NCBI GenBank assembly: GCA_950097015.1
Contig: CATNEN010000038.1
Span: 24,986,001 to 25,050,000 of the forward strand
Origin: Macrostomum hystrix
Taxonomy: Eukaryota; Animalia; Platyhelminthes
Reading direction: 5' to 3'
Length of the DNA stretch: 64,000 nt
Shown here: piece after piece, positions 8,776 through 41,663 of the stretch
How the letters are laid out: each line of letters starts with the position of its first letter
Numbering within the stretch: the stretch's first letter is position 1
Program-made: the position numbers and the translations under genes
The notes under the pieces: generated by a model
Database searches by the model: none
What the model saw: the letters and a program-made list of their open reading frames with translations, nothing else
Told to the model about the DNA's origin: nothing

Positions 8776-8808
<33 letters not shown>

Positions 8809-13344: not shown

Positions 13345-14439
13345 TTAAGATAATAATAGATCAAAAGGTTTACGAAAATACACTTCCTGCACAACGGATG
13401 TGCGCAGCTGATGCAGCCGCCTCCGAGCGAAGTCGTCAAGGTTGTTGAACTTCTCGAATTCCGAGACGGCTGCGTCAAAGGAGCCCACGTCGCCAGCGCG
13501 AGCCGCGGATGTCAGCCGAGTCACCAGCGAGAGCTCATTGCTTTCCGCAAACGAGCTGCTCATGCTAGCCAGCTGCTGAGCCTTCTCACCTGCGAGCTCA
13601 GCTGAGCCTGAGCACAGTAGACACAGACACGACTTGAACAGGTGATCCTTGGCTCCGAATCCCAACAGACTGTGACTCTGCGATGACACTCCCAGCTGCT
13701 CAAACTGCTCAGCTGCATCGGCCAGCCTCCCGCAGTCCGCCATCAGCTCCGCAGCCTTGGTGCGACAGCCGCCAGCGTTGGCCGGACTGTTCTCGCCGTC
13801 CCAGAAGTCCGCCGCTCTCAGGTACAGCCTGATCGCTGCCAACAGCTCCGCCTTATCGCCGCCGCAAAAGGATTTCAGCAGGTCTCCGGCCTCCTCCAGG
13901 TGTCTGGCCGCGATGCTGAACTGGCCCTGCTCTGCGTAGATCTGGGCTGCTCGCTGCATGAGCTCGGCAGCTTTCTTTGTGAACTCGACCTCCTTCAGCT
14001 TGCGGTAGCAGTTAGCCGCCTCCGAGAAGCTGTTGGCCGCGTCCATCTCGCCTCGACTCTGGCGTGAGAACTGCTCAGCCGCTGACTCGAACTCGCGACC
14101 AGCTTCGTGCCACTGCTGGAGAAGCTTGAATTTGTTTCCCCGATTAATCCTAGTAGTGGCGGAACTAAATTTAGATAAATTCTCGTAAATGTAATACGCT
14201 GTAATTAAGGCAAAAACGGCTCCTGCAATAATTATTTTGCGATGACAATTCTTCCTGTCGTTTGCAATGCATTGGACGCGTGAATCACACATGGCCAGTC
14301 TAAGACTGTCTCGAATTGGACGATTGACGCTGGTATGCAGGCTTGACTCTAATCGAACCTTGCTGATCAACTGGCCCATCGTTAATTTGCTCAACCTGGA
14401 AGTGGAACAAATAAGAAGAGGTGGAGTTAAGAGTGCCAT
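13345..14439 (-). CDS. alpha-SNAP-like protein, copy 1, with N-terminal predicted TM helix
   Basis: SNAP motifs EAANCYRK, IYAEQGQFSIAARH, AADFWDGENS, SHSLLGFGAKDHLFKSCLCLL; hydrophobic segment IIIAGAVFALITAYYIY. Confidence 0.88.
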   Translation of the reverse strand: MALLTPPLLICSTSRLSKLTMGQLISKVRLESSLHTSVNRPIRDSLRLAMCDSRVQCIANDRKNCHRKIIIAGAVFALITAYYIYENLSKFSSATTRINRGNKFKLLQQWHEAGREFESAAEQFSRQSRGEMDAANSFSEAANCYRKLKEVEFTKKAAELMQRAAQIYAEQGQFSIAARHLEEAGDLLKSFCGGDKAELLAAIRLYLRAADFWDGENSPANAGGCRTKAAELMADCGRLADAAEQFEQLGVSSQSHSLLGFGAKDHLFKSCLCLLCSGSAELAGEKAQQLASMSSSFAESNELSLVTRLTSAARAGDVGSFDAAVSEFEKFNNLDDFARRRLHQLRTSVVQEVYFRKPFDLLLS

Positions 14440-14475
14440 AGTTATCTACTAATCATCTTGTAATAACTTGCTACG

Positions 14476-14775
14476 AGGGTCAGTGAAATATGGTCTCACG
14501 CGTTTGCCTATAGCTCCAAGGTCCCTGAGCTCGATTCCGCGGCGAGGCCACATTAGTTCGGGGCGCAGTCGCGAAGAGAAGGCTTGGGGGCTTGTCGTGC
14601 AATTTACACCCTTAAAGACAATCTCCAAGGCACAGCGAGCGCGTGCACACTGCCTGACGATGAGAAAGTCAGGGGCTGATGTACACACATGTGTGAGCGT
14701 GTGCCTGCGTTCAGTGTGTGTGGGTGTGTGGTCAATTGTCACCAAATGATGGCCGGTACCACAGTCCTACTGTAA
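14476..14775 (+). mobile_element. SINE family A just upstream of SNAP copy 1
   Basis: Family-A body; repeated at 17313 and 25877 as part of the duplicated unit. Confidence 0.8.
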
Positions 14776-15554
14776 ATAGTATCAATGCTCACATATACAT
14801 AGTTGTTACTGTGATCAGCACCACTCAACGCTGTTGTTGTCTACAGTCAGTCGAATATAAGAAGTTCTCAATAAATAGCTGACCCAGATAATCTGGTAAG
14901 TCTAATTTCTGAGCAGCACCAATCCGCTATAAAAATGGGTCGAATAGAGATTTATATGAACCTGACTAAAGCTGGAGTACTTATATAATGAGCGAAAATG
15001 TTTAACTCATTAATATTTTTAGAGGCCCAAAATGTAAACTATTAAAACAGTTTAAAAAGGGACAAAAAAGCAACAAAAAGTAGTGCAAAACATAATGCTT
15101 ATATTTCTTGCATAATTAAATTTTTATTACGAATATTATTGAGCCTTCTCTACAAAGTACTTTCCTCCTGCATTGGCTAAGAAACGGATGTTTTAATTCA
15201 GATATAAGAGATCATCCATAAAATATGTGCCTCAATTAGCCGCTCCAATAGAATGTCGCAGAAAGGTACAAAATTATGCCTAGAAATACAGAGGGCATGT
15301 TTATTGGTCCGAAGCTGTCTAACGGAAACGGGTCATTCATTTTGCCGAAATATTCGGTTAGGTAGTTGCATAACTTACACATGTTCGCGTCGTTGGGTGA
15401 AAAAACAAACTTAAAGCGTCGATAAAGCGCTGTCGTACATTTTTACAGAAATTAAATTTTGAAAATCTTGGGTTTAAATGAAGTGCAGGCAACAAAATGT
15501 TTCTTGTAAAGTAAAATTATTTAGCTTACTAAGATGGCTTGGAGCTGACCGTAG

Positions 15555-17276
15555 CTATGTCAGCTGAATGAGTTGCTTGGAAACTATTAATTGCAGCTGA
15601 TGCAGCCGCCTCTGAGCGAAGTCGTCAAGGTTGTTGAACTTCTCGAAGTCGGCCACGGCTGCGTCAAAGGAGCCCACGTCGCCAGCGCGAGCCGCGGATA
15701 TCAGCCGAGTCACCAGCAAGAGCTCATCGCTGTCCGCAAACGAGCTGCTCATGCTAGCCAGCTGCTGAGCCTTCTCACCTGCGAGCTCAGCTGAGCCTGA
15801 GCACAGTAGGCACAGACACGACTTGAACAGGTGATCCTTGGCTCCGAATTCCAACAGACTGTGACTCTGCGATGACACTCCCAGCTGCTCAAACTGCTCA
15901 GCTGCATCGGCCATCCTCCCGCAGTCCGCCATCAGCTCCGCAGCCTTGGTGCGACAGCTGCCAGCGCTGGCCGGACTGTTCTCGCCATCCCAGAAGTCCG
16001 CCGCTCTCAGGTACAGCCCGATCGCTGCCGACAGCTCTGCCTGATCGCCGCCGCAAAAGGATTTCAGCAGGTCTCCGGCCTCCTCCAGGTGTCTGGCCGC
16101 GATGCTGAACTGGCCCTGCTCTGCGTAGATCTGGGCTGCTCGCTGCATGAGCTCGGCAGCCTTCTTTGTGAACTCGACCTCCTTCAGCTTGCGGTAGCAG
16201 TTGGCCGCCTCCGAGAAGCTGTTGGCCGCGTCCATCTCGCCTCGACTCTGGCGTGAGAACTGCTCAGCTGCATCGGCCATCCTCCCGCAGTCCGCCATCA
16301 GCTCCGCAGCCTTGGTGCAACAGCTGCCAGCGCTGGCCGGACTGTTCTCGCCATCCCAGAAGTCCGCCGCTCTCAGGTACAGCCCGATCGCTGCCGACAG
16401 CTCTGCCTGATCGCCGCCGCAAAAGGATTTCAGCAGGTCTCCGGCCTCCTCCAGGTGTCTGGCCGCGATGCTGAACTGGCCCTGCTCTGCGTAGATCTGG
16501 GCTGCTCGCTGCATGAGCTCCGCAGCCTTGGTGCGACAGCCGCCAGCACTGGCCGGACTGTTCTCGCCGTCCCAGAAGTCCGCCGCTCTCAGGTACAGCC
16601 CGATCGCTGCCGACAGCTCCGCCAGATCGCCGCCGCGAACGGATCTCAGCAGGTCTCCGGCCTCCTCCAGGTGTCTGGCCGCAATGCTGAACTGGCCCTG
16701 CTCTGCGTAGATCTGGGCTGCTCGCTGCATGAGCTCGGCGGCCTTCTTTGTGAACTCGACCTCCTTCAGCTTGCGGTAGCAGTTGGCCGCCTCCGAGAAG
16801 CTGTTGGCCGCGTCCATCTCGCCTCGACTCTGGCGTGAGAACTGCTCAGCCGCTGACTTGAACTTACGACATGCTTCGAGCCACTGCTGCCATTTTCGTT
16901 GCCAATTGTTGCCAATTTCGTTGCCAGCCGTTGCAATGCAGTTGTCGGGTGAATCACACATGGCCAATTTGTTTCCCCGATTAATCCTAGTGGTGGCGGA
17001 ACTAAATTTAGATAAATTCTCGTAAATGTAATACTCTGTAATTAAGGCAAAAACGGCTCCTGCAATAATTATTTTGCGATGACAATTCTTCCTGTCGTTT
17101 GCAATGCATTGGACGCGTGAATCACACATGGCCAGTCTAAGACTGTCTCGAATTGGACGATTGACGCTGGTATGCAGGCTTGACTCTAATCGAACCTTGC
17201 TGATCAACTGGCCCATCGTTAATGTGCTCAACCTGGAAGTGGAACAAATAAGAAGAGGTGGAGTTAAGAGTGCCAT
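15555..17276 (-). CDS. alpha-SNAP-like copy 2, chimeric, with in-frame internal duplications (573 aa)
   Basis: N-terminus of copy 1 type and C-terminus of copy 5 type; the QRAAQIY...TKAAELM segment occurs three times. Confidence 0.85.
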   Translation of the reverse strand: MALLTPPLLICSTSRLSTLTMGQLISKVRLESSLHTSVNRPIRDSLRLAMCDSRVQCIANDRKNCHRKIIIAGAVFALITEYYIYENLSKFSSATTRINRGNKLAMCDSPDNCIATAGNEIGNNWQRKWQQWLEACRKFKSAAEQFSRQSRGEMDAANSFSEAANCYRKLKEVEFTKKAAELMQRAAQIYAEQGQFSIAARHLEEAGDLLRSVRGGDLAELSAAIGLYLRAADFWDGENSPASAGGCRTKAAELMQRAAQIYAEQGQFSIAARHLEEAGDLLKSFCGGDQAELSAAIGLYLRAADFWDGENSPASAGSCCTKAAELMADCGRMADAAEQFSRQSRGEMDAANSFSEAANCYRKLKEVEFTKKAAELMQRAAQIYAEQGQFSIAARHLEEAGDLLKSFCGGDQAELSAAIGLYLRAADFWDGENSPASAGSCRTKAAELMADCGRMADAAEQFEQLGVSSQSHSLLEFGAKDHLFKSCLCLLCSGSAELAGEKAQQLASMSSSFADSDELLLVTRLISAARAGDVGSFDAAVADFEKFNNLDDFAQRRLHQLQLIVSKQLIQLT

Positions 17277-17312
17277 AGTTATCTACTAATCATCTTGTAA
17301 TAACTTGCTACG

Positions 17313-17612
17313 AGGGTCAGTGAAATATGGTCTCACGCGTTTGCCTATAGCTCCAAGGTCCCTGAGCTCGATTCCGCGGCGAGGCCACATTAGTTCGGGG
17401 CGCAGTCGCGAAGAGAAGGCTTGGGGGCTTGTCGTGCAATTTACACCCTTAAAGACAATCTCCAAGGCACAGCGAGCGCGTGCACACTGCCTGACGATGA
17501 GAAAGTCAGGGGCTGATGTACACACATGTGTGAGCGTGTGCCTGCGTTCAGTGTGTGTGGGTGTGTGGTCAATTGTCACCAAATGATGGCCGGTACCACA
17601 GTCCTACTGTAA
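17313..17612 (+). mobile_element. SINE family A (duplicated with the SNAP unit)
   Basis: Near-identical to 14476-14775. Confidence 0.8.
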
Positions 17613-18391: not shown

Positions 18392-18746
18392 CTATGTCAG
18401 CTGAATGAGTTGCTTGGAAACAATTAATTGCAGCTGATGCAGCCGCCTCTGAGCGAAGTCGTCAAGGTTGTTGAACTTCTCGAAGTCGGCCACGGCTGCT
18501 TCAAAAGAGCCCACGTCGCAAGCGCGAGCCGCGGACGTCAGCCGAGTCACCAGCGAGAGCTCATCGCTGTCCGCAAACGAGCTGCTCATGCTAGCCAGCT
18601 GCTGAGCCTTCTCACCTGCGAGCTCAGCTGAGCCTGAGCACAGTAGGCACAGACACGACTTGAACAGGTGATCCTTGGCTCCGATTCCCAACAGACTGTG
18701 ACTCTGCGATGACACTCCCAGCTGCTCAAACTGCTCAGCTGCATCG
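18392..18746 (-). pseudogene. alpha-SNAP-like copy 3, 5'-truncated by the duplication breakpoint
   Basis: Matches the 3' end of copy 5 (LLGIGAK, ACDVGSFEAAV, QLIQLT) and breaks into calpain sequence at ~18747. Confidence 0.88.
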
Positions 18747-18748
18747 AC

Positions 18749-21700: not shown

Positions 21701-23138
21701 AGAGAGCGAGAGGAAGGGAGAGAGCGAGATGAAGGGAAGAGCGAGAGGAAGGAGAGAGCGAGAGGAAGGGAGAGAGCGAGAGGAAGGAGAGAGCGAGAGG
21801 AAGGGAGAGAGCGAGAGGAAGGAGAGAGCGAGAGGAAGGGAGAGAGCGAGAGGAAGGAGAGAGCTAGAGGAAGGAGAGAGCGAGAGGAAGGAGAGAGCGA
21901 GAGGAAGGCAGAGAGCGAGAGGAAGGAGAGAGCGAGAGGAAGGGAGAGAGCTAGAGGAAGGAGAGAGCGAGAGGAAGGGAGAGAGCGAGAGGAAGGAGAG
22001 AGCGAGAGGAAAGGAGAGAGCGAGAGGAAGGAGAGAGCGAGAGGAAGGAGAGAGCTAGAGGAAGGAGAGAGCTAGAGGAAGGAGAGAGCGAGAGAAAGCA
22101 GAGAGCGAGACGAAGGGAGAGAGCTAGAGGAAGGAGAGAGCGAGAGGAAGGGAGAGAGCGAGAGGAAGGAGAGAGCGAGAGGAAGGAGAGAGCGAGAGGA
22201 AGGAGAGAGCGAGAAGAAGGGAGAGAGCGAGAGGAAGGAGAGAGCGAGAGGAAGGAGAGAGCGAGAGGAAGGGAGATAGCTAGAGGAAGGAGAGAGCGAG
22301 AGGAAGGAGAGAGCGAGAGGAAGGGAGAGAGCTAGAGGAAGGAGAGAGCGAGAGGAAGGAGAGAGCGAGAGGAAGGAGAGAGCGAGAGGAAGGAGAGAGC
22401 GAGAGGAAGGGAAGAGCGAGAGGAAGGAGGGAGCGAGAGGAAGGAGAGAGCGAGAGGAAGGGAGAGAGCGAGAGGAAGGAGAGAGCGAGAGGAAGGGAAG
22501 AGCGAGGGGAAGGGAAGAGCGAGAGGAAGGAGGGAGCAGTAGGAACAAGCCACTCATAAAGCGGCTGCTTTTGTGACTGGATAACACGAACATGATAAAA
22601 CCAAGCTAGTATTCTGTAAAAAAATTCCCCAATTGATATTCCCATTCCGTCAGGTCCAAGCCAGAAGATTGGTGCCCGCCAGTTGCAGCAGGTTCTGAAC
22701 GTGACCTACAGCAAGGAGATAAAAACTTTTCCTGGCTTCAGCTTGGACACCTCGCGCAGTATTCTGGCCTTAGTGGACGTCGACATGTGTGGCAGCATGA
22801 ACTACGCTGAGTTCAAACAGCTGTGGGGCCAGGTGCGACTACTGCGCAGGGTTTTCAAAGACTTCGATGCCGAAAATAGCGGCTTCTTTGACGCATTCAA
22901 GCTTAGGGAGGCGCTGAAACAGGGCGGACTGAGTGTCAGCAACAAGGTGTACCACGCTGTAGCTGTCCGATTCACCGACCGCGACAAGGGCCTAGTTGGC
23001 TTTGAAGATTTTGTGCTGCTCTGCACCAGACTGCGCATCGCATTCGAGTCGTTCAACGCGATGCCGAAATGCGACGAGGAGGGCTCGGTTGGAATGGTGA
23101 ATCACGACAACTACCTGGAGCAAGCAATTTACAGCTGA
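18749..23138 (+). pseudogene. Partial calpain duplicate: exon fragment 18749-18861, expanded intron, intact terminal PEF exon 22654-23138
   Basis: Copy of 9299-10105. ORF 22683 has the same protein sequence as ORF 9650; splice sites are retained. Confidence 0.88.
18882..22537 (+). repeat. ~3.65-kb polypurine minisatellite, 15-16-bp unit GAGAGCGAGAGGAAG(G)
   Basis: Directly visible; only ~80 bp at the paralogous site 9428-9505. Confidence 0.98.
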
Positions 23139-23282
23139 GACTATTTTGTGCGCAGTAGAGCAAAGTCAGTACACAACGAACTCATTAACCGCACGTAAAA
23201 AATACAATCTCGCTATACATTATGGATTAAAGAATTTAATCCGCGACACATTGCTTGTCGATACAGTTCAGTTCAAGCATAG

Positions 23283-24374
23283 GACGCTGAGCGGTCTTAC
23301 GCGTTTGGCTCTCGTATTGGCTCTCGTATTGGCTCTCGTATTGGCTCTCGTATTGGCTCTCGTATTGACTCTCGTATTGGCTCTCGTATTGGCTCTCGTA
23401 TTGGCTCTCGTATTGACTCTCGTATTGGCTCTCGTATTGGCTCTCGTATTGGCTCTCGTATTGGCTCTCGTATTGGCTCTCGTATTGGCTCTCGTATTGG
23501 CTCTCGTATTCGCTCTCGTATTGGCTCTCGTATTGGCTCTCGTATTGGCTCTCGTATTGGCTCTCGTATTCGCTCTCGTATTGGCTCTCGTATTCGCTCT
23601 CGTATTGGCTCTCGTATTCGCTCTCGTATTGGCTCTCGTATTCGCTCTCGTATTCGCTCTCGTATTGGCTCTCGTATTCGCTCTCGTATTGGCTCTCGTA
23701 TTCGCTCTCGTATTCGCTCTTGTATTGGCTCTCGTATTCGCTCTCGTATTGGCTCTCGTATTGGCTCTCGTATTCGCTCTCGTATTGGCTCTCGTATTCG
23801 CTCTCGTATTGGCTCTCGTATTCGCTCTCGTATTCGCTCTCGTATTGGCTCTCGTATTCGCTCTCGTATTGGCTCTCGTATTGGCTCTCGTATTGGCTCT
23901 CGTATTGGCTCTCGTATTGGCTCTCGTATTCGCTCTCGTATTGGCTCTCGTATTGGCTCTCGTATTGGCTCTCGTATTCGCTCTCGTATTGGCTCTCGTA
24001 TTCGCTCTCGTATTGGCTCTCGTATTGGCTCTCGTATTGGCTCTCGTATTGGCTCTCGTATTGGCTCTCGTATTGGCTCTCGTATTGGCTCTCGTATTGG
24101 CTCTCGTATTGGCTCTCGTATTGGCTCTCGTATTGGCTCTCGTATTGGCTCTCGTATTCGCTCTCGTATTGGCTCTCGTATTCGGTCACCTTAGTTTTGG
24201 GCGCAGCCGTGTAGAGAAGGCTTGGGAGGATTGCATTGCAAGTTTTTCGCTCTTGAAGACCAACCTCCATGGCACAGTGAGAGTGTGCACTGCCTGACGA
24301 TGAGAAAGTCAGGGCAGATGAACACACCTGTGTGAGCGTGTGCCTGCATACTGTTCGGCTTGCTATTATTATTA
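23283..24374 (+). mobile_element. SINE family A with embedded 12-bp array (duplicate of 10250-10901)
   Basis: Same head, body and flanks. Confidence 0.8.
23305..24184 (+). repeat. 12-bp minisatellite (TT[G/C]GCTCTCGTA)n, about 73 units
   Basis: Directly visible. Confidence 0.98.
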
Positions 24375-24836: not shown

Positions 24837-25841
24837 CTAATGCAGCCGCCTCCGAGCGAACTTCTTGAAGTCGGCCACGGCTGCGTAAAAAGAGCCCACG
24901 TCGCCAGCGCGAGCCGCGGAAGTCAGCCGAGTCACCAGCGAGAGCTCATCGCTGTCCGCAAACGAGCTGCTCATGCTAGCCAGCTGCTGAGCCTTCTCAC
25001 CTGCGAGCTCAGCTGAGCCTGAGCACAGTAGGCACAGACACGACTTGAACAGGTGATCCTTGGCTCCGAATCCCAACAGACTGTGACTCTGCGATGACAC
25101 TCCCAGCTGCCTAAACTGCTCAGCTGCATCGGCCAGCCTCCCGCAGTCCGCCATCAGCTCCGCAGCCTTGGTGCGACAGCCACCAGCGTTGGCCGGACTG
25201 TTCTCGCCGTCCCACAGCCCGATCGCTGCCGACAGCTCCGCCTGATCGCCGCCGCAAAAGGATTTCAGCAGGTCTCCGGCCTCCTCCAGGTGTCTGGCCG
25301 CGATGCTGAACTGGCCCTGCTCTGCGTAGATCTGGGCTGCTCGCTGCATGAGCTCGGCGGCCTTCTTTGTGAACTCGACCTCCTTCAGCTTGCGGTAGCA
25401 GTTGGCCGCCTCCGAGAAGCTGTTGGCCGCGTCCATCTCGCCTCGACTCTGGCGTGAGAACTGCTCAGCCGCTGACTCGAACTCGCGACCAGCTTCGTGC
25501 CACTGCTGGAGAAGCTTGAATTTGTTTCCCCGATTAATCCTAGTAGTGGCGGAACTAAATTTAGATGAATTCTCGTAAATGTAATACTCTATTTTTGCGG
25601 TAACAATGAGGGTAAAAACGGCTCCTCCAAGAAATATTTTGTGCTTCCAATTCTTCTTGTCGTTTGCAATGTAGTTGTCGCGTGAATCACACATGGCCAG
25701 TCTAAGACTGTCTCGAATTGGACGATTGACGCTGGTATGCAGGCTTGACTCTAATCGAACCTTGCTGATCAACTGGCCCATCGTTAATGTGCTCAACCTG
25801 GAAGTGGAACAAATAAGAAGAGGTGGAGTTAAGAGTGCCAT
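24837..25841 (-). CDS. alpha-SNAP-like copy 4, predicted TM anchor, with in-frame deletions and a shortened C-terminus
   Basis: Paralog of copy 1; lacks YLRAADF and part of the last helix; ends RRRLH. Confidence 0.8.
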   Translation of the reverse strand: MALLTPPLLICSTSRLSTLTMGQLISKVRLESSLHTSVNRPIRDSLRLAMCDSRDNYIANDKKNWKHKIFLGGAVFTLIVTAKIEYYIYENSSKFSSATTRINRGNKFKLLQQWHEAGREFESAAEQFSRQSRGEMDAANSFSEAANCYRKLKEVEFTKKAAELMQRAAQIYAEQGQFSIAARHLEEAGDLLKSFCGGDQAELSAAIGLWDGENSPANAGGCRTKAAELMADCGRLADAAEQFRQLGVSSQSHSLLGFGAKDHLFKSCLCLLCSGSAELAGEKAQQLASMSSSFADSDELSLVTRLTSAARAGDVGSFYAAVADFKKFARRRLH

Positions 25842-25876
25842 AGTTATCTACAAATCATCTTGTAATAACTTGCTAC

Positions 25877-26170
25877 GAGGGTCAGTGAAATATGGTCTCA
25901 CGCGTTTGCCTATAGCTCCAAGGTCCCTGAGCTCGATTCCGCGGCGAGGCCACATTAGTTTGGGGCGTAGTCGCGAAGAGAAGGCTTGGGGGCTTGTCGT
26001 GCAATTTACACCCTTAAAGACAATCTCCAAGGCACAGCGAGCGCGTGCACACTGCCTGACGATGAGAAAGTCAGGGGCTGATGTACACACATGTGTGAGC
26101 GTGTGCCTGCGTTCAGGGTGTGTGGTAAATTGTCACCAAATGATGGCCGGTACCACAGTCCTACTGTAAA
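25877..26170 (+). mobile_element. SINE family A (duplicated with the SNAP unit)
   Basis: Near-identical to 14476-14775. Confidence 0.8.
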
Positions 26171-31255: not shown

Positions 31256-32275
31256 CTAGCGCAACGGCTCGGCGTCCCCAGCCACAGATGTGCGCAGCTG
31301 ATGCAGCCGCCTCTGAGCGAAGTCGTCAAGGTTGTTGAACTTCTCGAATTCCGCGACGGCTTCGTCAAAGGAGCCCACGTCGCCAGCGCGAGCCGCGGAC
31401 GTCAGCCGAGTAACCAGCGAGAGCTCATCGCTGTCCGCAAACGAGCTGCTCATGCTAGCCAGCTGCTGAGCCTTCTCACCTGCGAGCTCAGCTGAGCCTG
31501 AGCACAGTAGGCACAGACACGACTTGAACAGGTGATCCTTGACTCCGAATCCCAACAGACTGTGACTCTGCGATGACACTCCCAGCTGCTCAAACTTCTC
31601 AGCTGCATCGGCCAGCCTCCCGCAGTCCGCCATCAGCTCCGCAGCCTTGGTGCGACAGCCGCCAGCGTTGGCCGGACTGTTCTCGCCGTCCCAGAAGTCC
31701 GCCGCTCTCAGGTACAGCCCGATCGCTGCCGACAGCTCTGCCTGATCGCCGCCGCGAACGGATCTCAGCAGGTCTCCGGCCTCCTCCAGGTGTCTGGCCG
31801 CGATGCTGAACTGGCCCTGCTCTGCGTAGATCTGGGCTGCTCGCTGCATGAGCTCGGCAGCCTTCTTTGTGAACTCGACCTCCTTCAGCTTGCGGTAGCA
31901 GTTGGCCGCCTCCGAGAAGTTGTTGGCCGCGTCTATCTCGCATCGACTCTGGCGTGAGAACTGCTCAGCCGCTGACTTGAACTTACGACCAGCTTCGAGC
32001 CACTGCTGCCTCTTTTTGAAATTGATGCCTTTCTCAATCAAGCGTTGAAGAGAGCCCGTATTGTTATGCCTTCTATAGAACATGTAAGCAGCTAGAAGCA
32101 GCATCGGTATCAGCATCAGCAGCGTCAGCTGTATCAGGATGATGAGGCTGATTGAATTAAAAAATTTCGGCGGTGGCGAAGCCGTTGGTGTCGCTGTCGT
32201 TTCTGTGGTCGTTGCGAAAACTGGTGACGACATCGATGAAGTTGTGGTAGTCTCTATTGTTGAATTCGAACTCAT
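31256..32275 (-). CDS. alpha-SNAP-like copy 6 with mucin-like S/T stalk and predicted TM helix
   Basis: MSSNSTIETTTTSS...TTTETTATPT, long hydrophobic run ISLIILIQLTLLMLIPMLLLAAYMFY then RRH, SNAP core, tail GDAEPLR. Confidence 0.9.
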   Translation of the reverse strand: MSSNSTIETTTTSSMSSPVFATTTETTATPTASPPPKFFNSISLIILIQLTLLMLIPMLLLAAYMFYRRHNNTGSLQRLIEKGINFKKRQQWLEAGRKFKSAAEQFSRQSRCEIDAANNFSEAANCYRKLKEVEFTKKAAELMQRAAQIYAEQGQFSIAARHLEEAGDLLRSVRGGDQAELSAAIGLYLRAADFWDGENSPANAGGCRTKAAELMADCGRLADAAEKFEQLGVSSQSHSLLGFGVKDHLFKSCLCLLCSGSAELAGEKAQQLASMSSSFADSDELSLVTRLTSAARAGDVGSFDEAVAEFEKFNNLDDFAQRRLHQLRTSVAGDAEPLR

Positions 32276-33011: not shown

Positions 33012-33916
33012 TTAAGTTATACTATCATGCTCCAATCGCAACGGCACGGTCTCCCCTGCCACGGATCCGCGCAGCTGATGCGGCCGCCTCATAGACGAAG
33101 CGTAAAGGTTTTTGAACTTCTCGAAGTCGGCCACGGCTGCGTCAAAAGAGCCCACGTCGCAAGCGAGAGCCGCGGACGTCAGCCGAGTCACCAGCGAGAG
33201 CTCATCGCTGTCCGCAAACGAGCTGCTCATGCTAGCCAGCTGCTGAGCCTTCTCACCTGCGAGCTCAGCTGAGCCTGAGCACAGTAGACACAGACACGAC
33301 TTGAACAGGTGATCCTTGGCTCCGAATCCCAACAGACTGTGACTCTGCGATGACACTCCCAGCTGCTCAAACTGCTCAGCTGCATCGGCCAGCTTCCCGC
33401 AGTCCGCCATCAGCTCCGCAGCCTTGGTGCGACAGCCGTCAGCGCTGGCCGGACTGTTCTCGCCGTCCCAGAAGTCCGCCGCTCTCAGGTACAGCCCGAT
33501 CGCTGCCGACAGCTCCGCCTGATCGCCGCCGCGAACGGATCTCAACAGGTCTCCGGCCTCCTCCAGGTGTCTGGCCGCGATGCTGAACTGGCCCTGCTCT
33601 GCGTAGATCTGGGCTGCTCGCTGCATGAGCTCGGCGGCCTTCTTTGTGAACTCGACCTCCTTCAGCTTGCGGTAGCAGTTGGCCGCCTCCAAGAAGCTAT
33701 TGGCCGCGTCCATCTCGCCTCGACTCTGGCGTGAGAACTGCTCAGCCGCTGACTCGAACTCCCGACCAGCTTCGAGCCACTGCTGGAGAAGCTTGAATTT
33801 GTTTCCTGATTGAACAAACTTTTCTGCTTTTTTGCTCGTATAACGATCAAAATAAAGCCGAAAACCATGATACCATGGGTAGCTGCGCTTGAGATTATTC
33901 GCAGTTCATTTAGCAT
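33012..33916 (-). CDS. alpha-SNAP-like copy 7; TM-containing N-terminus joined to the core by a 1-nt frameshift at 33828-33833
   Basis: ORF 33662-33916 encodes GIMVFGFILIVI. One extra A in the A6 run gives RAKKAEKFVQSGNKFKLLQQW, in frame with ORF 33012-33713. Confidence 0.72.
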
Positions 33917-34611
33917 CCTGGCTTTAATAATTTTCAGCGCCGAACTAATTACTTACACTTGTATTTTCCGCTCGTCGAAGCTGAAACGCTGAAGCTGAAA
34001 AAATGTTTTTTAGATTATGCCTTTTTGCAGATCGTTAAGTGAGAAATTATTAGAAGCGATACAAATACTTTGATTTTATATGGCAGTCTGTTTATTGCAG
34101 AGAGTTGCTAGTTTAGTAACTTAGCTTTGTCACTTTTTGCAGCTTGTTATAATCTACCTTTTAATATATGCCCACACTGACTAGGGATTATCAATTTTCA
34201 GGTCTCGCCTCTGCACTTGGATCCGCGCCAAAGGCATTCTCTCGTCATGCGTGGTGGGGAGTGGCCTTTTTGTAAGCCTGTGCGCGTGATTCCTTTGTCT
34301 GGCTGTCTTTCGATTGTAATGACCGGCTCATGCGATCAGCAGAGGATACTGCCTGTCGACTTTTAGCCATAAATCATGGCTAATTTAGTATTAAGTCTGT
34401 GTGTCCTAGAATTCTCCCCCCCAACGTACATCCTACAAATACATGACGTCAGCTTCTATTAATAGCAACAGACGGTCATGAATCTACTGGCTTGTTCATC
34501 TGACGTCAGTTTCTATTAATAGAAAGCATATGATGCGCCTGCTACCACCGACCTAAAATAAGTGCCCCACTGAGGCTGAGACCAGATAATTTTTCGTATT
34601 TTTTTAAACAG

Positions 34612-34922
34612 TTTGATTCCTCGGCGAGGCCACATTTATTAGGGGCGCAGCCGCCGAGAGATGGCTTGTGAGCTTGTCGTGCAATTGACGCCCTTGAGTG
34701 CCAACCTACAAGGCACAGTGAATTGTACACTGCCTGACGATGAGAAAGTCAGAGCAGATGTACACACCTGTGTGAGCGTGTGCCTGCGTACAGTATCTGT
34801 GTGCGTGTCTGCTCAGGAGTCAGCGGAATGGGCAGAATTGCCTCCCCGCTTGCTGCGGGTCTAGTGTCACTAAATGATGTGCCACTGCCCGCAGCCCTCC
34901 TGCAATTATTATTATTACTATT
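34612..34922 (+). mobile_element. SINE family A, 5'-truncated
   Basis: Family-A body from the B box to the (TTA)n tail. Confidence 0.85.
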
Positions 34923-35502
34923 ATGGCAGTATGCTTTATCCGCTCTTACTACCAATATCTAGTTGAGGGTGTCCGATGGTCTTTAGCACTGTGCTAATCT
35001 AATTCCTGCGAGAGCTCTGGCTCTAACTAATTTCTCTTCTAGTGTAAAGCTACTTCCTGACCGCAGTTCAAGGAACTTCAAGGCACTCAGGTGGCAGCTA
35101 CCTTACGGAAGTGACTTCCGCTGGAAAATTTACCTTGGCTACAGATTGGAGCTTACTGTCTAGTGAGTTGGTTGATCTCATTGTTACTACGCGCTGGCAA
35201 TTGATAATCTAAAATTATCTTCCGCAAACAACTCAGATTTCCTAGACTGCCAAACAGCTTACTCAGCCGACATAAATGAAACTACACTTAATCAGAGCAG
35301 TATACAAAATTGCAAAGGAAGGCTTGATAATAAGAAGTTTAAATATAAGTTGTGGTCTACTTGTGTATTTAGAAAAGCATTATATTTGGCTATATTATTT
35401 AATAACACTTTGCTTTACCTTTCCCTATGAAAAATCACTTGCTGTCAGATGTTGAAAATCTTGGTTAGTTAAAATCACAACAAAGCTACGACTTTACATA
35501 AA

Positions 35503-35573
35503 GTTAGAAATACTTTTGTTAGAAATAATTTTGTTAGAAATACTTTTGTTATAAATAATTTTGTTAGAAATAC
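35503..35573. repeat. 15-bp tandem repeat GTTAGAAATA(C/A)TTTT, ~4.5 units
   Basis: Directly visible. Confidence 0.8.
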
Positions 35574-36109
35574 TGTCTAGTCAAACTGAAAGCTGAATAA
35601 ATGATCCTATTCAATGAAACCTATAAAAGTTAAATATTTCGAAACAAGAAATCTAGCAAGGTTTCTTTTGTACATAAACAAACGACAATTATCACCAAAT
35701 CATAGCAAAGAACTGCCAGTTGAGAGCGCTAATTATAACAAACTTGAAAAAATGATACATTTTGATTGGGCAAGCATTGATGCCTTCAATCAAACCAATG
35801 TGCAATTTTTTTTTAAAAACAAACTAACATCTTATGAAACATTTTTGTACTTTTTTCATTTTAGGAAAAAAATAACCTAGAATAAATATTGTGCATTGGA
35901 AATTAGTTGAAAAAACTATTCCCCAAGCTAAATCTAAGGCAAAAAGTGGCACTCAAGAAAGCAAAAACAATAGGCTGAGGGAATCATTGTATCAGAGAAT
36001 ACGAGCGCACACATCAACACTCACGCGACTTTCGAGACAGCCAAAAAGAATATCTATGTGAAAAAAAATGTTTATATCATAATTTGTAAGTGGAAAATTT
36101 TAAACAAAT

Positions 36110-37699
36110 CTAGCGCAATGGCTCGGCGTCCCCAGCCACGGATCCGCGCAGCTGACGCAGCCGCCTCTGAGCGAAGTCGTCAAGGTTGTTGAACTTCTCG
36201 AATTCCGCGACGGCTTCGTCAAAGGAGCCCACGTCGCCAGCGCGAGCCGCGGACGTCAGCCGAGTCACCAGCGAGAGCTCATCGCTGTCCGCAAACGAGC
36301 TGCTCATGCTAGCCAGCTGCTGAGCCTTCTCACCTGCGAGCTCAGCTGAGCCTGAGCACAGTAGGCACAGACACGACTTGAACAGGTGATCCTTGGCTCC
36401 GAATCCCAACAGACTGTGACTCTGTGATGACACTCCCAGCTGCTCAAACTGCTCAGCTGCATCGGCCAGCCTCCCGCAGTCCGACATCAGCTCCGCAGCC
36501 TTGGTGCGACAGCCGCCAGCGCTGGCCGGACTGTTCTCGCCATCCCAGAAGTCCGCTGCTCTCAGGTACAGCCCGATCGCTGCCGACAGCTCTGCCTGAT
36601 CGCCGCCGCGAACGGATCTCAGCAGGTCTCCGGCCTCCTCCAGGTGTCTGGCCGCGATGCTGAACTGGCCCTGCTCTGCGTAGATCTGGGCTGCTCGCTG
36701 CATGAGCTCGGCAGCCTTCTTTGTGAACTCGACCTCCTTCAGCTTGCGGTAGCAGTTGGCCGCCTCCGAGAAGCTGTTGGCCGCGTCCATCTCGCCTCGA
36801 CTCTGGCGTGAGAACTGCTCAGCCGCTGACTCGAACTCACGACCCGCTTCGAGCCACTGCTGGAGAACTTTGAATCTGTTGCCCTTTTCAACTGACATTC
36901 GAGATGAATTTCTCAGTGTCATTTTTAAAAGAAACGCAACTGGAATGAGGCTTGTGACAATGAGGAGTAACACGATAAAAATAACAAAGAAATTGTTTTT
37001 AGACAGCTTTTGTGCTGATGAACTTATTTTCACGTCTTGCCACATGCACTCGATGATTGTCTTTGTGAAGTCGACATTTCCTCCCTTGAGGCTGCAGTAG
37101 CTGCTTGCCGCTTCCATATCGCCTAGCGTCTGCTTTAAGCACCGCTCAACCGCTGAATCGACCCTTCGACCACTTTTTTGCGCCTCCTTGTGAACCTCAA
37201 CTGGACTGGGAACATTGTTTTCATCATCTCTCAACATGTAGTTGATGTCTTTCCTTAATAATTTGTTTATCAGTTTGCAAAAGCGTCTTGCGGCTTCCAT
37301 ATTGCCTAGCAACTGTTGTAAGCACTGCTCAGCCGCTGACTCGAACTCAGGGCCACCCTCGGGCCACTTCTGGCAGCTCTTCAATTGAGATTCATCGATA
37401 TTCTGATCAGATCGCACAATGTAATTAATGGCTTGCTTTGTAAAATTGTTCGTCAGCTGTCTGAACTCGCGCTTTATTTTCTGGTAGCGATCAGCCTGAT
37501 CCGGTTGACCAGTCATATTGCGTAGCCAGTGTTTTAAGCACTCCTCAATTGGTGACTCGACATCTGGACTAACTTGATGGGCAATGTCTTGATGTTCGCG
37601 ACTCGACTGGCGGACAGGGAGTTTATAGAAAACAATTGCGGCGATCAGGAGCATAATAAAAGAAATCACTAAGGTTTTCTGTGGATTCATCTCGTTCAT
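36110..37699 (-). CDS. alpha-SNAP-like copy 8 (529 aa): two hydrophobic helices flanking degenerate SNAP-derived repeats
   Basis: LVISFIMLLIAAIVFY and FFVIFIVLLLIVTSLIPVAFLL; between them EFESAAEQCLQQLLGNMEAA and VDSAVERCLKQTLGDMEAA; then the intact core. Confidence 0.9.
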   Translation of the reverse strand: MNEMNPQKTLVISFIMLLIAAIVFYKLPVRQSSREHQDIAHQVSPDVESPIEECLKHWLRNMTGQPDQADRYQKIKREFRQLTNNFTKQAINYIVRSDQNIDESQLKSCQKWPEGGPEFESAAEQCLQQLLGNMEAARRFCKLINKLLRKDINYMLRDDENNVPSPVEVHKEAQKSGRRVDSAVERCLKQTLGDMEAASSYCSLKGGNVDFTKTIIECMWQDVKISSSAQKLSKNNFFVIFIVLLLIVTSLIPVAFLLKMTLRNSSRMSVEKGNRFKVLQQWLEAGREFESAAEQFSRQSRGEMDAANSFSEAANCYRKLKEVEFTKKAAELMQRAAQIYAEQGQFSIAARHLEEAGDLLRSVRGGDQAELSAAIGLYLRAADFWDGENSPASAGGCRTKAAELMSDCGRLADAAEQFEQLGVSSQSHSLLGFGAKDHLFKSCLCLLCSGSAELAGEKAQQLASMSSSFADSDELSLVTRLTSAARAGDVGSFDEAVAEFEKFNNLDDFAQRRLRQLRGSVAGDAEPLR

Positions 37700-38140
37700 T
37701 GTTCTTTCACTGAAATTGAAATGGGATAGTTAAGCTTAGTGCGATAGATTTACAAATTTTGTTCAAGTTTAAATTTTTTTCGACTTTAAAAGTTTCCATT
37801 AAAAATTCTGGCGTTACGTTATGAATAGTTGTTCGCAGCAACAGAGTCAGTGTCTGAGTAATTTATTTGTTCATCACATATGAAAGTTTCTAGGTTAGTC
37901 AACAGAAAAAAACATTCGGTTCCTATCGATTCTAACAGTTCCTAACAGTTTGAAAATCGAAGAATTGAAATTTAAGATATCATGTGCAAAGCTGCAACGC
38001 TAGCTCAATAAAAATAGTCTGGAATGTAAAAAAACTATTACGGAAAACTTTTGCTTTTTTACGGAAGTTTTTTGCTTCATCGCTGGCACAAAATAAGTGC
38101 ACCTTCCAATACACTAATACCTCAAAAGATTAAAACAAAT

Positions 38141-39292
38141 CTAGCGCAACGGCTCGGCGTCCCCAGCCACAGATGTGCGCAGCTGATGCAGCCGCCTCTG
38201 AGCGAAGTCGTCAAGGTTGTTGAACTTCTCGAATTCCGAGACGGCTGCGTCAAAGGAGCCCACGTTGCAAGCGCGAGCCGCGGACGTCAGCCGAGTCACC
38301 AGCGAGAGCTCATCGCTGTCCGCAAACGAGCTGCTCATGCTAGCCAGCTGCTGAGCCTTCTCACCTGCGAGCTCAGCTGAGCATGAGCACAGTAGGCACA
38401 GACACGACTTGAACAGGTGATCCTTGGCTCCGATTCCCAACAGACTGTGACTCTGCGATGACACTCCCAGCTGCTCAAACTGCTCAGCTGCATCGGCCAG
38501 CCTCCCGCAGTCCGCCATCAGCTCCGCAGCCTTGGTGCGACAGCCGCCAGCGCTGGCCGGACTGTTCTCGCCGTCCCAGAAGTCCGCCGCTCTCAGGTAC
38601 AGCCCGATCGCTGCCGACAGCTCTGCCAGATCGCCGCCGCGAACGGATCTCAGCAGGTCTCCGGCCTCCTCCAGGTGTCTGGCCGCGATGCTGAACTGGC
38701 CCTGCTCTGCGTAGATCTGGGCTGCTCGCTGCATGAGCTCGGCGGCCTTCTTTGTGAACTTGACCTCTTTCAGCTTGCGGTAGCAGTTGGCCGCCTCCGA
38801 GAAGCTGTTGGCCGCGTCCATCTCGCCTCGACTCTGGCGTGAGAACTGCTCCGCCGCTGACTCGAACTCCCGACCAGCTTCGAGCCACTGCTTGCTCGCT
38901 TTGAGTCTGTTGCCTTTTACAACCGAGATTCTTGGCGTCGCATCTCCAACTATAGGGCAGCAGTCAGTACACTGCCTTGTGTGTGCACTATTAAGGCGGC
39001 CAATCAGTCTTTGAATAATGTCGCGTGTCAAAGCGAGGAGTTTTTTCATGACAACGGTATCAAAGACTGAATCTCCGACTACAAAAACTGCCAGCAAGAC
39101 CAAGGCGACTAATTGAATGCTATATTTCGAGTTTGAATACACGTTTAGAACCATCGCCAACGCAATGATGATCAAGGCGATCGAAAGAAACGTCATCAGT
39201 CTTTTAAATTTGAATTTCTTTTCTTGCAGCTGCAGAGCGGGACTCAGTTGTCTACCGTGTTCAATGGTCAGTGTGGTATATTCGGCTGGCAT
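38141..39292 (-). CDS. alpha-SNAP-like copy 9 with two adjacent predicted TM helices
   Basis: LMTFLSIALIIIALAMVLNVY and IQLVALVLLAVFVVG; SNAP core; tail GDAEPLR. Confidence 0.9.
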   Translation of the reverse strand: MPAEYTTLTIEHGRQLSPALQLQEKKFKFKRLMTFLSIALIIIALAMVLNVYSNSKYSIQLVALVLLAVFVVGDSVFDTVVMKKLLALTRDIIQRLIGRLNSAHTRQCTDCCPIVGDATPRISVVKGNRLKASKQWLEAGREFESAAEQFSRQSRGEMDAANSFSEAANCYRKLKEVKFTKKAAELMQRAAQIYAEQGQFSIAARHLEEAGDLLRSVRGGDLAELSAAIGLYLRAADFWDGENSPASAGGCRTKAAELMADCGRLADAAEQFEQLGVSSQSHSLLGIGAKDHLFKSCLCLLCSCSAELAGEKAQQLASMSSSFADSDELSLVTRLTSAARACNVGSFDAAVSEFEKFNNLDDFAQRRLHQLRTSVAGDAEPLR

Positions 39293-39513
39293 GATTACTG
39301 CAGGCTGGTGGGCTCTGAAAGTGAGGTTATCAAGCTATCGTCAGAAATGCATTGTCAACGCACGTATCAACGGGTGGAGAATAAATATCTAGGGGCCCTG
39401 TTACTTATTTATTTTCATTTATTTTTTTGACGTTTAAATTATTTGATTTTTAAGTAATTTAAGAAATGGGAGCTATCTTTTAAATTGACAGTCATGAAAG
39501 AAATTAACTTTTT

Positions 39514-39840
39514 GGGGGTCGGTGGCTGAGCGGTTAACGCGTTTTCCTCTCGCACCACGGTCCCTAAGTTCGATTCCACAGCGAGACCACATTCATTTGG
39601 GGCGCAGCCGCTGAGAGAAGGCTTGAGGGCTTGTCGTGCAATTTACGCCCTTGAGGGCCAACACTGCCTGATAATGAGAAAGTCAGGGCAGATATACACA
39701 GCTGTGTGAGCGTATGCATGCGTACAGTATCTGTGTGTGGTCAGGAGTCAGCGAAATGGGCAGAATTGCCTTCTCGCTGGCTGCGGGTCTAGTGTCACAA
39801 ACTGATGTACTATTCATTGCCCGCAGGCCTCCTGCAAATT
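39514..39840 (+). mobile_element. SINE family A (internal deletion)
   Basis: GGTCGGTGGCTGAGCGGTTAACGCG head, B box, family-A body. Confidence 0.87.
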
Positions 39841-40344
39841 AATGTTAGTAATATAATAAAATTATTGAAAAAAAAATTACTGTGCAAAACTGGGATCAAA
39901 ATTAGAAGCCGAGCATAAGGCTCACGTACAGTTTTATTAAGTATTTTTATGCTTCAGCGATCAGGTAACTGACAACTATGTTGTGTTGAAAATAAAAAAA
40001 TTAAAAAAGAAGAGTTAATTTAGACAGAAAGTTTTTTAATTTGTTTTAAAACTAGGTTAAAATCTTAACCACTTAAGATCTGGCTAAAAAACGAAAAACG
40101 GAAAGTTACGTATCCTTTTGCGAAAGATGTGCGAAAGATTTTGGCTTCAACCTGGCAGTTTGCATACCTAACGCGCACTATTAATATCGTCGTGAGACAG
40201 ATGTGTCAGGATACGCTCGTACGCGTGACCGCGTGTCAATATTATACGGGTGATTACATGTTAAATTCACATGAAACTAATTTTCGGAATGTTTAATCGC
40301 ATCAAGCTTCTGAATTGTTCATTACGCAATAGATTTACAGATGT

Positions 40345-41445
40345 CTAAGTCAAAGATCTGCCACGTGACTTCACAATGCCATCCCGTGCCTCGTTCAGTC
40401 GGCGTTGAACAAATTCGTCGAGACTGTTGAACCTCGTGAACTCCTTCAGGGCGGCGTCAAACGTGTCAACACAGCCCGTTTCGCTAGCTTTGGCGATCTC
40501 TTTGACTAGCTGAAATTCGTCGCTGTTTTGAAAGTGACCGCACAGTCTGGCCAACTCGTCTGCCTTCATGGCGCAGGCCTTATGATCCAAAGATAGGCAT
40601 AGACAGCACTTAAACATGTGATCCTTGGAGCCGTATTCGAGCAGGCTGTGTGTCTTGGACAGCTTGCTGACGTTTTGAAACTCATCAGCTGCTTTTTTCA
40701 GCATACCGTAGTCAGCTAGTACAATCGCGGCCTTCGTCAGGCAGGCGGCTGCGCTGCTCGGACTGTCCTCGTTCATAAAGTATTCGGCAGCTTTCTTGTA
40801 GTATTTGACAGCGTCATTGCCAATTTCAGCACTACTTTGGTCTACGACTACAAAGCCTTCGGCCTCCATCGTTTGAACATCTATGGGTGAAGGTGAGGTC
40901 GCACTATTTTCTTGTCCAAATTCCACTTCCAATTCAAGCTGTTCGGACAGTTCACCGGCTGACTCCAGCAGTCTGGCAGCAATGTTAAACTGGCCTAGCT
41001 GGCAGTACAACTGAGCGGCGTGCTCTAAACAAGGTATGGCATTTTTCTTTTTCACTTTACGAAAGCAATTTGCAGCAGTGCTGAAGCAATCTGCCTGCTC
41101 ATACTGACAGCCGTCTCTCTCTGCGTAACGTTTCGCTGCTTCAACAAAAGCATCACCAGCTCGATTCCAATTGTTCGCTAGTTTGAACAAATTGCCGGCC
41201 ATGACGAATTTCTTATCGGAATCCTGCGAACCAGAAAAGCTGGCAAACCTATGTGGATGAGATTGTGCCTGGTTGAATAGATCCTCTGCTTTCTCATTAT
41301 AAGAGCATAAATTAGCATCCGTAGAATGATATTCAGTACTGATATTCGGTCCTGACTGACTACCTGGTTCGGAATCGTCTGTTTTAGGTGAGTTGTCCAT
41401 CTCAGACTGATCTAGAATTCGATTTAAAGAAAATTCTTGACTCAT
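40345..41445 (-). CDS. Divergent soluble alpha-SNAP-like protein (copy 10), likely older or parental paralog
   Basis: AGNLFKLANNWNRAGDAFVEAA, AANCFRKV, GQFNIAAR, LLEYGSKDHMFKCCLC; no TM; ~40-aa acidic insertion; start Met uncertain. Confidence 0.88.
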   Translation of the reverse strand: MSQEFSLNRILDQSEMDNSPKTDDSEPGSQSGPNISTEYHSTDANLCSYNEKAEDLFNQAQSHPHRFASFSGSQDSDKKFVMAGNLFKLANNWNRAGDAFVEAAKRYAERDGCQYEQADCFSTAANCFRKVKKKNAIPCLEHAAQLYCQLGQFNIAARLLESAGELSEQLELEVEFGQENSATSPSPIDVQTMEAEGFVVVDQSSAEIGNDAVKYYKKAAEYFMNEDSPSSAAACLTKAAIVLADYGMLKKAADEFQNVSKLSKTHSLLEYGSKDHMFKCCLCLSLDHKACAMKADELARLCGHFQNSDEFQLVKEIAKASETGCVDTFDAALKEFTRFNSLDEFVQRRLNEARDGIVKSRGRSLT

Positions 41446-41663
41446 TTTTTTCTTAATCAGCAACTGGAAAGCAAGTTCAAAATAATATTCATATCCATTT
41501 GGTTAGATACGAAGTAAATTTTCAGGCACTAGATTCCAAATATTTTTGTTTCTAAAGTTTTGTGAACTAGAAAAAAATCATCAAATTTATCAGCGTTATT
41601 AAAACTTTGCTTGTATTTTAACTTAAAATTTAGAATATGGTTCCGTTTGCGAATTTGAGTACA

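Follow-up and report, generated by a model that had tools for sequence, protein, structure and literature searches.

A stretch of 64,000 nucleotides from the genome of the flatworm Macrostomum hystrix (positions 24,986,001 to 25,050,000 of contig CATNEN010000038.1; C38:24986001-25050000 in the assembly searched here, which holds 220,453,370 bases in 42 contigs), referred to below as the window, contains a tandem array of ten alpha-SNAP-like loci. The loci, numbered c1 to c10, are co-oriented on the minus strand between positions 13345 and 41463. The interpretation favoured here, to which a probability of about 0.6 is given, is that c1 to c9 represent Macrostomum-specific, intronless alpha-SNAP paralogues, the products of which, judging from their sequences, are probably membrane-resident NSF adaptors that face the cytosol, and the cores of which have probably been homogenised by gene conversion. 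The first ~48 residues of alpha-SNAP, comprising helix 1, the hydrophobic, membrane-inserting loop and the beginning of helix 2, would in these proteins have been exchanged for a module with one or two transmembrane (TM) helices. The genes would be transcribed, receive a spliced leader (SL) just upstream of the ATG that opens the anchor, and be translated as one exon. The anchor would then insert with its more basic C-terminal flank in the cytosol, such that the SNAP core is displayed on the cytosolic face of the membrane, held there by a helix that is continuous with the first helix of the core. From this position the core could feasibly bind SNARE bundles in the same membrane, and recruit and activate NSF via a conserved C-terminal leucine. 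The permanent anchor would take over the function of the missing loop, like that of an engineered TM-Sec17 protein, and the differing N-terminal modules would probably put individual copies in different membranes or cell types. GC-biased conversion would meanwhile keep the cores near-identical within a species, with the N-termini, which lie outside the converted tract, diverging rapidly. A more specific proposal, put forward tentatively and again from sequence, is that these are modular TM alpha-SNAPs that combine a variable anchor with a constant NSF-adaptor core protected by gene conversion, in which the fast-evolving anchors may assign the recycling or regulation of SNAREs to certain organelles or secretory cell types.

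Constant core and variable N-termini

All of the loci tested match the Pfam SNAP profile PF14938, with E-values between 1e-40 and 5e-74, and the ten co-oriented SNAP copies listed in an earlier, sequence-only reading of the window are therefore upheld. The matches of c1 to c9 begin at about position 40-42 of the 282 positions in the profile. The closest relatives of solved structure are the alpha-SNAP chains of 20S complexes (E 3e-29 in a phmmer search of the PDB, the value obtained with c5), which align from alpha-SNAP residue ~49-50, and homology of the core to alpha-SNAP begins at N50-M51-F52-K53. Helix 1 and the apolar membrane-insertion loop are absent from c1 to c9, as they are from three M. 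lignano proteins described below, and alignment to alpha-SNAP thus bears out the earlier suggestion that it is this region which has been replaced. A gamma-SNAP origin was also considered, and was rejected since the best PDB matches and the tree described below point to alpha-SNAP.

At the DNA level, the cores of c1 to c9 are 95-97% identical over ~737 bp. Homology begins exactly at the codons for G-N-[KR]-F-K and stops around the stop codon, the flanking sequences being unalignable, and variable sites are scarcest in the middle of the shared tract. The G+C (GC) content of the core tract is 61-62%, compared with 37-45% in the N-terminal coding parts and 46% in the window as a whole; the near-identical, GC-rich core that had been described as starting at this motif is accordingly confirmed. 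A larger unit, consisting of a c4-type N-terminus, the spacer and the core of the upstream neighbour c5, has been copied twice with 97% identity, at c1/c2 and at c2/c3, and a segmental duplication relates 14059-16271 to 25449-27665, also with 97% identity. Core identity is 86-95% within species and 59-67% between M. hystrix and M. lignano. Greater likeness within than between species, sharp tract edges, GC enrichment within the tract and orthologous flanks across species are the features by which concerted evolution by gene conversion is recognised, of which the first three are found here.

Upstream of the core, six types of N-terminus (those of c1/2/4, c5, c6, c7, c8 and c9) can be distinguished, between which no similarity is detectable, as had been noted previously. 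Their reading frames are open for 36-272 codons, with stop codons in the other five frames except for one frame of the short c7 piece. Strongly hydrophobic helices are present in five of the six types, the highest Kyte-Doolittle (KD) 19-mer means being 2.53 for c5, 2.74 for c6, 2.08 for c7, 3.06 for c8 and 2.56 for c9, with a second helix of 2.42 in both c8 and c9. The earlier claim of one or two strongly hydrophobic helices in every N-terminus hence holds for c5, c6, c8 and c9 (KD 2.4-3.1), and less strongly for c7, but not for the c1/2/4 type, in which the hydrophobic segment, IIIAGAVFALITAYYI, is weak (16 aa, KD 1.50 in c1). A set of 177 open-frame pieces of 90 aa from elsewhere in the window served as a control, of which 2.3% reach a KD mean of 2.4 and 3.4% reach 2.0. 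Chance extension of open reading frames (ORFs) was rejected as an explanation on these grounds, since open frames are seldom this hydrophobic.

The complete build, with a variable N-terminus joined to an intact core, is found in five loci, namely c1, c5, c6, c8 and c9, all on the minus strand. That of c5 (26949-27995) has a single-pass anchor at residues ~49-72, followed by RKLCHK, a linker of 19-22 aa, according to the helix end chosen, and a core ending in IQLT. In c6 (31256-32275), a Ser/Thr-rich disordered segment of 40 aa precedes a putative TM helix at residues 42-66, YRRH and a core ending in EPLR. The longest N-terminus is that of c8 (36110-37699), in which a hydrophobic, signal-like segment at residues 10-24 is followed by a domain of 210 aa, a second putative TM helix at 237-258 and the core; the 210-aa domain contains two degenerate copies of the first hairpin of the core (E 3e-8 and 1e-6). 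The c9 protein (38141-39292) has a basic KKFKFKR sequence, a hairpin of two helices (32-51 and 59-77) and a linker of 49-54 aa, again depending on the helix end. The ORF of c1 (13345-14439; Pfam SNAP E 2.4e-50) carries the c1/2/4-type N-terminus, and translation probably begins at its second ATG, at 14379 (MGQLISK), with a pyrimidine tract and CAG 18 nt before it. The M-G-Q...S/K start of c1/2/4, and of the M. lignano protein P0002, appears to resemble a myristoylation motif.

The remaining TM-type loci, also on the minus strand, are damaged or rearranged, so that the uninterrupted cores reported from the sequence-only reading apply to c1, c5, c6, c8 and c9 but not to c2, c3 or c4. In c2 (15555-17276; 573 aa), a c1-type N-terminus leads into a rearranged core in which part of the sequence is present three times, and c3 (18392-18715) is a C-terminal core fragment of 107 aa, the upstream portion of which has been replaced by a GA-rich microsatellite. 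The c1-type N-terminus of c4 (24837-25841) precedes a core with two in-frame deletions, of 7 and 6 aa, and an early stop, leaving it without the C-terminal tail; this copy is probably degenerate. The core of c7 (33012-33916) is otherwise complete, with a short anchor ORF at 33806-33916 (MLNELRIISSAATHGIMVFGFILIVIRAKKQK) that is one frame off it. The frame shift lies somewhere within 33806-33916, a run of six A residues at 33828-33833 being one possible site, and c7 is either a pseudogene or the product of a homopolymer error in the long reads; its two frames were treated as separate pieces in the analysis.

The distance between the last helix and the core is 11-22 residues in eight of the nine proteins from both species, the exception being c9. 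The C-terminal flank of the helix is more basic than the N-terminal flank in c5, c6, c7, c8 (second helix) and the M. lignano protein P0003, whereas in c9 it is the N-flank of the hairpin that is basic. By the positive-inside rule, this pattern would place the core in the cytosol. The basic residues said earlier to follow most of the helices are thus present in c5 to c8, but not in c9 or in c1/2/4, where the N-flank is the more basic. An AlphaFold2 model of c6 (predicted local distance difference test score 89.8), in which residues 1-40 are disordered, has residues 41-88 as a single continuous helix that runs from the TM segment through the linker into the first helix of the core. The remainder adopts the SNAP fold, and Foldseek aligns it with alpha-SNAP/Sec17 of 20S complexes at TM-scores of 0.78-0.81 and root-mean-square deviations of 2.4-2.9. 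The solubility that would be expected of an alpha-SNAP or Sec17 protein is contradicted by the predicted TM helices.

Expression and trans-splicing of c8 to c10

RNA contigs from three runs of one study (X4, X5 and X7), which are identical to the window and cover 36000-41464, end at 37710, 39315 and 41412, and then run on as the reverse complement of CTGCGAAGACTCAATTTATTGCAT. This sequence corresponds to the 3' portion of the 35-nt spliced leader of Macrostomum, CGGTCTCTTACTGCGAAGACTCAATTTATTGCATG (PMC8629364), a leader reported to be highly conserved in M. hystrix (PMC10468722). All three SL junctions fall at a pyrimidine-tract AG on the minus strand. The acceptor of c8 (37710-37711) is located 10 nt before the ATG, the genome reading tttcag followed by tgaaagaacaATG, and that of c9 (39315-39316) lies 22 nt before the ATG. 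In c10, the acceptor (41412-41413) is 11 nt before the ATG at 41400, which is the start codon; the start assigned earlier at 41463 is not sustained, the codon there being TTG. A second, weaker contig end at 41464 coincides with another tttccag, and c10 seemingly has two alternative SL acceptors (41412 and 41464).

The anchor/core junctions are bridged in the RNA. One contig (36809-37710) spans that of c8 at 36883/36884 and another (38853-39315) that of c9 at 38914/38915, both without differences from the genome, and a single contig (39890-41412) carries the whole c10 ORF together with a 3' untranslated region of 455 nt. No intron-like joints were seen in the RNA contigs over c8 to c10. The colinear, junction-bridging SL contigs therefore indicate that the mature c8 and c9 mRNAs include the TM-coding parts and that the genes are single-exon. 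The first ATG after the SL junction is the anchor ATG in both. The sequence-only reading had held that transcripts beginning or trans-spliced downstream of the TM-coding part would speak against its proposal; at c8 and c9, where this was checked, the leader is found upstream of the anchor ATG, and the proposal was not refuted. The spliced leader itself ends in AUG, and in c8 this is followed at once by UGA after trans-splicing (37700-37713), while in c9 the leader AUG opens an out-of-frame upstream ORF of 18 codons that overlaps the start codon (39293-39318).

The spacers between these genes are 430 nt (c9-c8) and 1029 nt (c10-c9), the latter including a dispersed repeat of ~330 nt. Both are covered by RNA contigs at gene-like depth, with depth falling to ~4 upstream of 41464. 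Operons have been defined in Macrostomum by an SL at the 5' end of the mRNA and by same-strand neighbours less than 1 kb apart once repeats are subtracted (PMC8629364), and c10, c9 and c8 fall within this definition. The three genes fit an SL-resolved polycistronic unit, co-transcription being something that contigs cannot prove. Additionally, a contig from run X1, which derives from a close relative, joins the core to a c1-type N-terminus, hinting that this type is also present or expressed in that relative.

Relatives, functional residues and competing explanations

Every TM-type copy in the M. hystrix genome lies within the window. Contig C7 carries an ordinary alpha-SNAP of two exons, the loop of which (SSFFGIFS) is intact, and the copies in the array are therefore extra; contig C25 carries a divergent, N-truncated SNAP-like locus. 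In M. lignano, at least three clusters have the same architecture (P0001 to P0003; BOX15_Mlig022924g1/g2 and BOX15_Mlig021756g2). These are present in GenBank as hypothetical or TPR-region proteins, with gene models that include the N-termini, and each is reported on a contig of 411,559 bp. Their variable hydrophobic N-termini are followed by G-[NI]-[RK]-[LH]-K and by cores that are ~90% identical to one another. None of the N-termini of P0001 to P0003 is similar to one from M. hystrix, and hence no orthologous N-termini were found across the species in the comparison with these three proteins.

When 1.84 billion representative proteins were scanned with phmmer, 853 matches were obtained at E <= 0.001, of which the best 150 were inspected. 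Only M. lignano proteins were found below E 1e-30, the next matches (from 2.7e-29) being ordinary alpha-SNAPs, and among the best 150 of the 853 matches only the Macrostomum proteins have an N-terminal hydrophobic helix; within these limits the build recurs in M. lignano alone. A protein-word search with c10 returned distant SNAPs only, and a search of the ESM Atlas ordinary SNAP clusters only. Literature searches on Macrostomum alpha-SNAP, on the Mlig genes and on natural membrane-anchored SNAPs found nothing relevant except the engineered TM-Sec17, so that the view that no natural family of this kind has been described stands for the protein libraries and literature searched. One further protein, P0080 (501 aa), combines an entire alpha-SNAP, its loop intact, with a C-terminal multi-pass hydrophobic region from residue ~333; it may be a SNAP anchored at its C-terminus or the result of a fused gene model.

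In a quick tree, for which the canonical M. hystrix alpha-SNAP entered the alignments as exon 1 only (L001:1483-2103), the anchored copies of both species form one clade with Shimodaira-Hasegawa-like approximate likelihood-ratio test (SH-aLRT) support of 96, within which each species has its own subclade. Moving outward from this clade are c10, then P0010, then the canonical M. hystrix alpha-SNAP. The c10 locus (40345-41400, minus strand) encodes a divergent, full-length, intronless paralogue without a hydrophobic helix, which shares 37% identity with the cores, retains helix 1 and a degenerate, weakened loop (RFASFSG), and has an insertion of ~40 aa; it is a different and older paralogue. The C25 locus (C25:1007789-1008885; L015/L017) and P0010 represent a third Macrostomum SNAP-like kind, with an N-terminus truncated just before A-N-K-L-K, no hydrophobic helix and an insertion at the position of that in c10, which branches between c10 and the canonical alpha-SNAP.

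Joined as they are to N-termini that cannot be aligned, the constant cores most probably owe their sameness to gene conversion that is GC-biased and does not extend beyond the core; recent independent expansions, in which N-termini were repeatedly captured or replaced, are a less probable alternative. Repeated acquisition of a TM anchor, as the sequence-only reading proposed, is not established, because an old anchored ancestor with diverging N-termini and GC-biased conversion of the core fits at least as well. That reading's candidate roles for the proteins were compartment-specific SNARE regulators, fusion inhibitors and pathogen-effector decoys. If conversion is indeed at work, the array would be a clean example of domain-restricted concerted evolution, in which a GC-rich, homogenised core lies beside unalignable N-termini.

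Residue numbers for SNARE and NSF contacts are those which we take to apply to alpha-SNAP and Sec17, and were checked against the mammalian-type protein P0007. The penultimate leucine (alpha-SNAP L294; Sec17 L291/L292) is kept in c1, c5, c6, c8, c9, c10, P0001 to P0003 and P0010, and is lost from c4 by way of the early stop. On the basic SNARE-binding face, which is retained only in part (Sec17 K159/K163, equivalent to alpha-SNAP K163/K167, plus K122, K93/94, R116, K56 and K203), K167, K203 and K94 are kept and K122 and K93 are changed to R. The array proteins thus resemble alpha-SNAP/Sec17 in fold and homology from residue ~50 to the C-terminus, in the penultimate leucine and in several SNARE-facing Lys/Arg residues. 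They differ in that TM modules replace helix 1 and the loop (alpha-SNAP F27/F28, Sec17 F21/M22), in that the genes are intronless, multi-copy and in tandem as opposed to one spliced gene, and in that K163, R116 and K56 are altered. In the engineered TM-Sec17, a Vti1 TM anchor placed on the Sec17 N-terminus yields a protein that stimulates fusion and no longer requires an apolar loop to do so (Song et al. 2017; PMC5540461). The likeness lies in an N-terminal TM anchor on a SNAP, which in vitro replaces the membrane-binding role of the loop (PMC5540461). Conversely, TM-Sec17 is artificial and retains the whole of Sec17, including helix 1 and the loop, whereas the natural proteins delete both and have a short linker to helix 2.

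A number of observations weigh against the interpretation of the array proteins as membrane-resident NSF adaptors. Four of the nine TM-type loci (c2, c3, c4 and c7) are damaged or rearranged, and the RNA evidence covers 36000-41600, hence c8 to c10 only, and consists of contigs that give no expression levels. The TM calls derive from hydropathy scales (KD 19-mer means) as opposed to a trained predictor. Judged by their flank charges, c1/2/4, P0001 and P0002 would be oriented the other way round or have no genuine TM helix, and c8 would have one topology or another according to whether its first helix is cleaved off as a signal peptide. Several SNARE-facing residues have been lost (K163 to G, R116 to Q, and K56, which is mostly Q), such that SNARE binding may be weaker or different. 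Change in the N-termini is, in addition, mostly non-synonymous, with 19 non-synonymous and 2 synonymous differences between c1 and c4, and three of three differences between run X1 and the window in the N-terminus of c8. This pattern fits weak constraint as well as diversifying selection, and the selection on anchors that had been supposed earlier is not demonstrated by it. For the core, the ratio of non-synonymous to synonymous substitution rates (dN/dS) is ~0.2-0.8 in most pairs, which counts in favour of the interpretation, and 1.5 in one.

Some of these observations could also be expected if the loci were chimeric genes of recent origin without much, or any, specific function, in which duplicated cores lacking their 5' ends took whatever upstream sequence provided an ATG, with hydrophobicity a by-product and expression coming from the trans-spliced, co-transcribed cluster. 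The broken loci would fit this explanation, as would N-termini without similarity within or between species that change mostly by non-synonymous substitution, a core dN/dS just moderately below 1, and a region full of segmental duplications, microsatellites and transposons. It is nevertheless considered unlikely, given that the build of anchor plus core, with its 11-22-aa spacing in eight of nine proteins, is found also in M. lignano at 59-67% core identity, and has therefore persisted across a deep split. Hydrophobic helices in five of six N-terminus types, compared with 2-3% of control frames, and SL acceptors placed directly before the anchor ATGs, argue against it also. Similarly improbable is the idea that the proteins are membrane-tethered SNARE clamps or inhibitors, in which the anchored core would hold t-SNAREs or SNARE bundles inactive, or titrate NSF, and so act as a local brake on fusion. 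The change of 3 of the ~7 SNARE-facing basic residues is in keeping with such a role, as is the multi-copy, rapidly evolving nature of the family, and alpha-SNAPs that are atypical or in excess can have inhibitory or toxic effects, as with those of soybean Rhg1, which are tandemly amplified, lineage-specific and soluble, with altered function, and which differ at the C-terminal NSF-binding tail. However, the NSF-stimulating penultimate leucine and the acidic/Leu C-terminal tail, neither of which would be required by a pure clamp, are conserved in both species, and it is at exactly this tail that the Rhg1-type variants differ. The resemblance to Rhg1 is thus one of tandem, lineage-specific alpha-SNAP amplification; the array proteins conserve the tail and replace the N-terminus, whereas in Rhg1 the protein is soluble and the tail is altered.

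Two further explanations concern the N-termini themselves, and both appear highly improbable. The hydrophobic segments could in principle be signal sequences or reverse-orientation signal anchors, in which case the SNAP-like domain would reside in the lumen or be secreted, and its role would have nothing to do with NSF. The signal-peptide-like start of c8 and the more basic N-flank in c1/2/4, P0001 and P0002 would accord with this, and the rapid evolution of the N-termini is reminiscent of secreted reproductive proteins of Macrostomum. In c5 and c6, however, 40-50 residues precede the helix and the more basic flank comes after it, and the core retains many unpaired cysteines and the NSF-activating tail, as is typical of a cytosolic SNAP. 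Alternatively, the N-termini might constitute an untranslated 5' leader, with translation proceeding from an internal methionine of the core, a possibility that gains from the practice of extending ORF calls to the first upstream start codon, and from c7, which is open only from an internal methionine. Against this are the 80-272 open codons upstream of the core where other frames are closed, the anchor ATG being the first after the SL junction in c8 and c9, and the inclusion of the N-termini in the M. lignano gene models. Cytosol-facing, membrane-resident NSF adaptors hence remain the favoured interpretation of the array.

Genomic setting and significance of the array

The region of the array is rich in segmental duplications, microsatellites and transposons. 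A calpain gene lies nearby on the plus strand (6172-10105), and its last exon, a penta-EF-hand ORF of 151 aa, together with an adjoining hexanucleotide 'LALV/ESQY' microsatellite (9650-10784), is duplicated with identical translation in the middle of the array (22683-24297), where it adjoins the 4-kb GA-rich microsatellite (~18.7-22.6 kb) that truncates c3. Near-identical Helitron/PIF1-helicase-like ORFs, each with an adjoining ORF, flank the array in inverted orientation (10888-12204, plus strand; 46941-48545, minus strand), with the helicase fragments themselves at 11503-12204 (plus) and 46941-48005 (minus) on opposite sides, and an additional partial copy is present at 49473-49913. A seemingly intact Ty3/gypsy-type retrotransposon, with a gag-like ORF of 331 aa and a pol ORF of 1457 aa, occupies 50936-57523 on the minus strand.

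A dispersed repeat of ~250-330 bp, the copies of which are 73-86% identical, is found at 14498-14748, 17335-17585, 25900-26126, 34610-34924 and 39537-39866, with further copies at ~1834-2141, 7055-7342, 8430-8806 and 10707-10882. Copies are located upstream of c1, c2 and c4 (~60 nt before the listed ATG), c9 (~250 nt) and c7 (~700 nt). The depth of RNA contigs over this repeat is very high (1000-2400).

SNAPs are textbook soluble adaptors, as the name says, and it has been debated whether the apolar N-terminal loop serves purely as an anchor or disturbs the bilayer as well, a debate that rests on reconstitution with artificial TM-Sec17. If the more specific proposal, of variable anchors on a constant core, is correct, SNAP function need not be soluble in vivo, and the N-terminal loop would essentially be a membrane anchor. 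A natural, expressed family in which the loop has been deleted, TM helices substituted and the NSF-activating tail kept would be the in vivo counterpart of TM-Sec17. M. lignano is amenable to RNA interference and transgenesis, and since it has the family, localisation and loss-of-function tests look practical. The existence of such proteins would suggest that SNARE disassembly or its regulation can be hard-wired to particular membranes.

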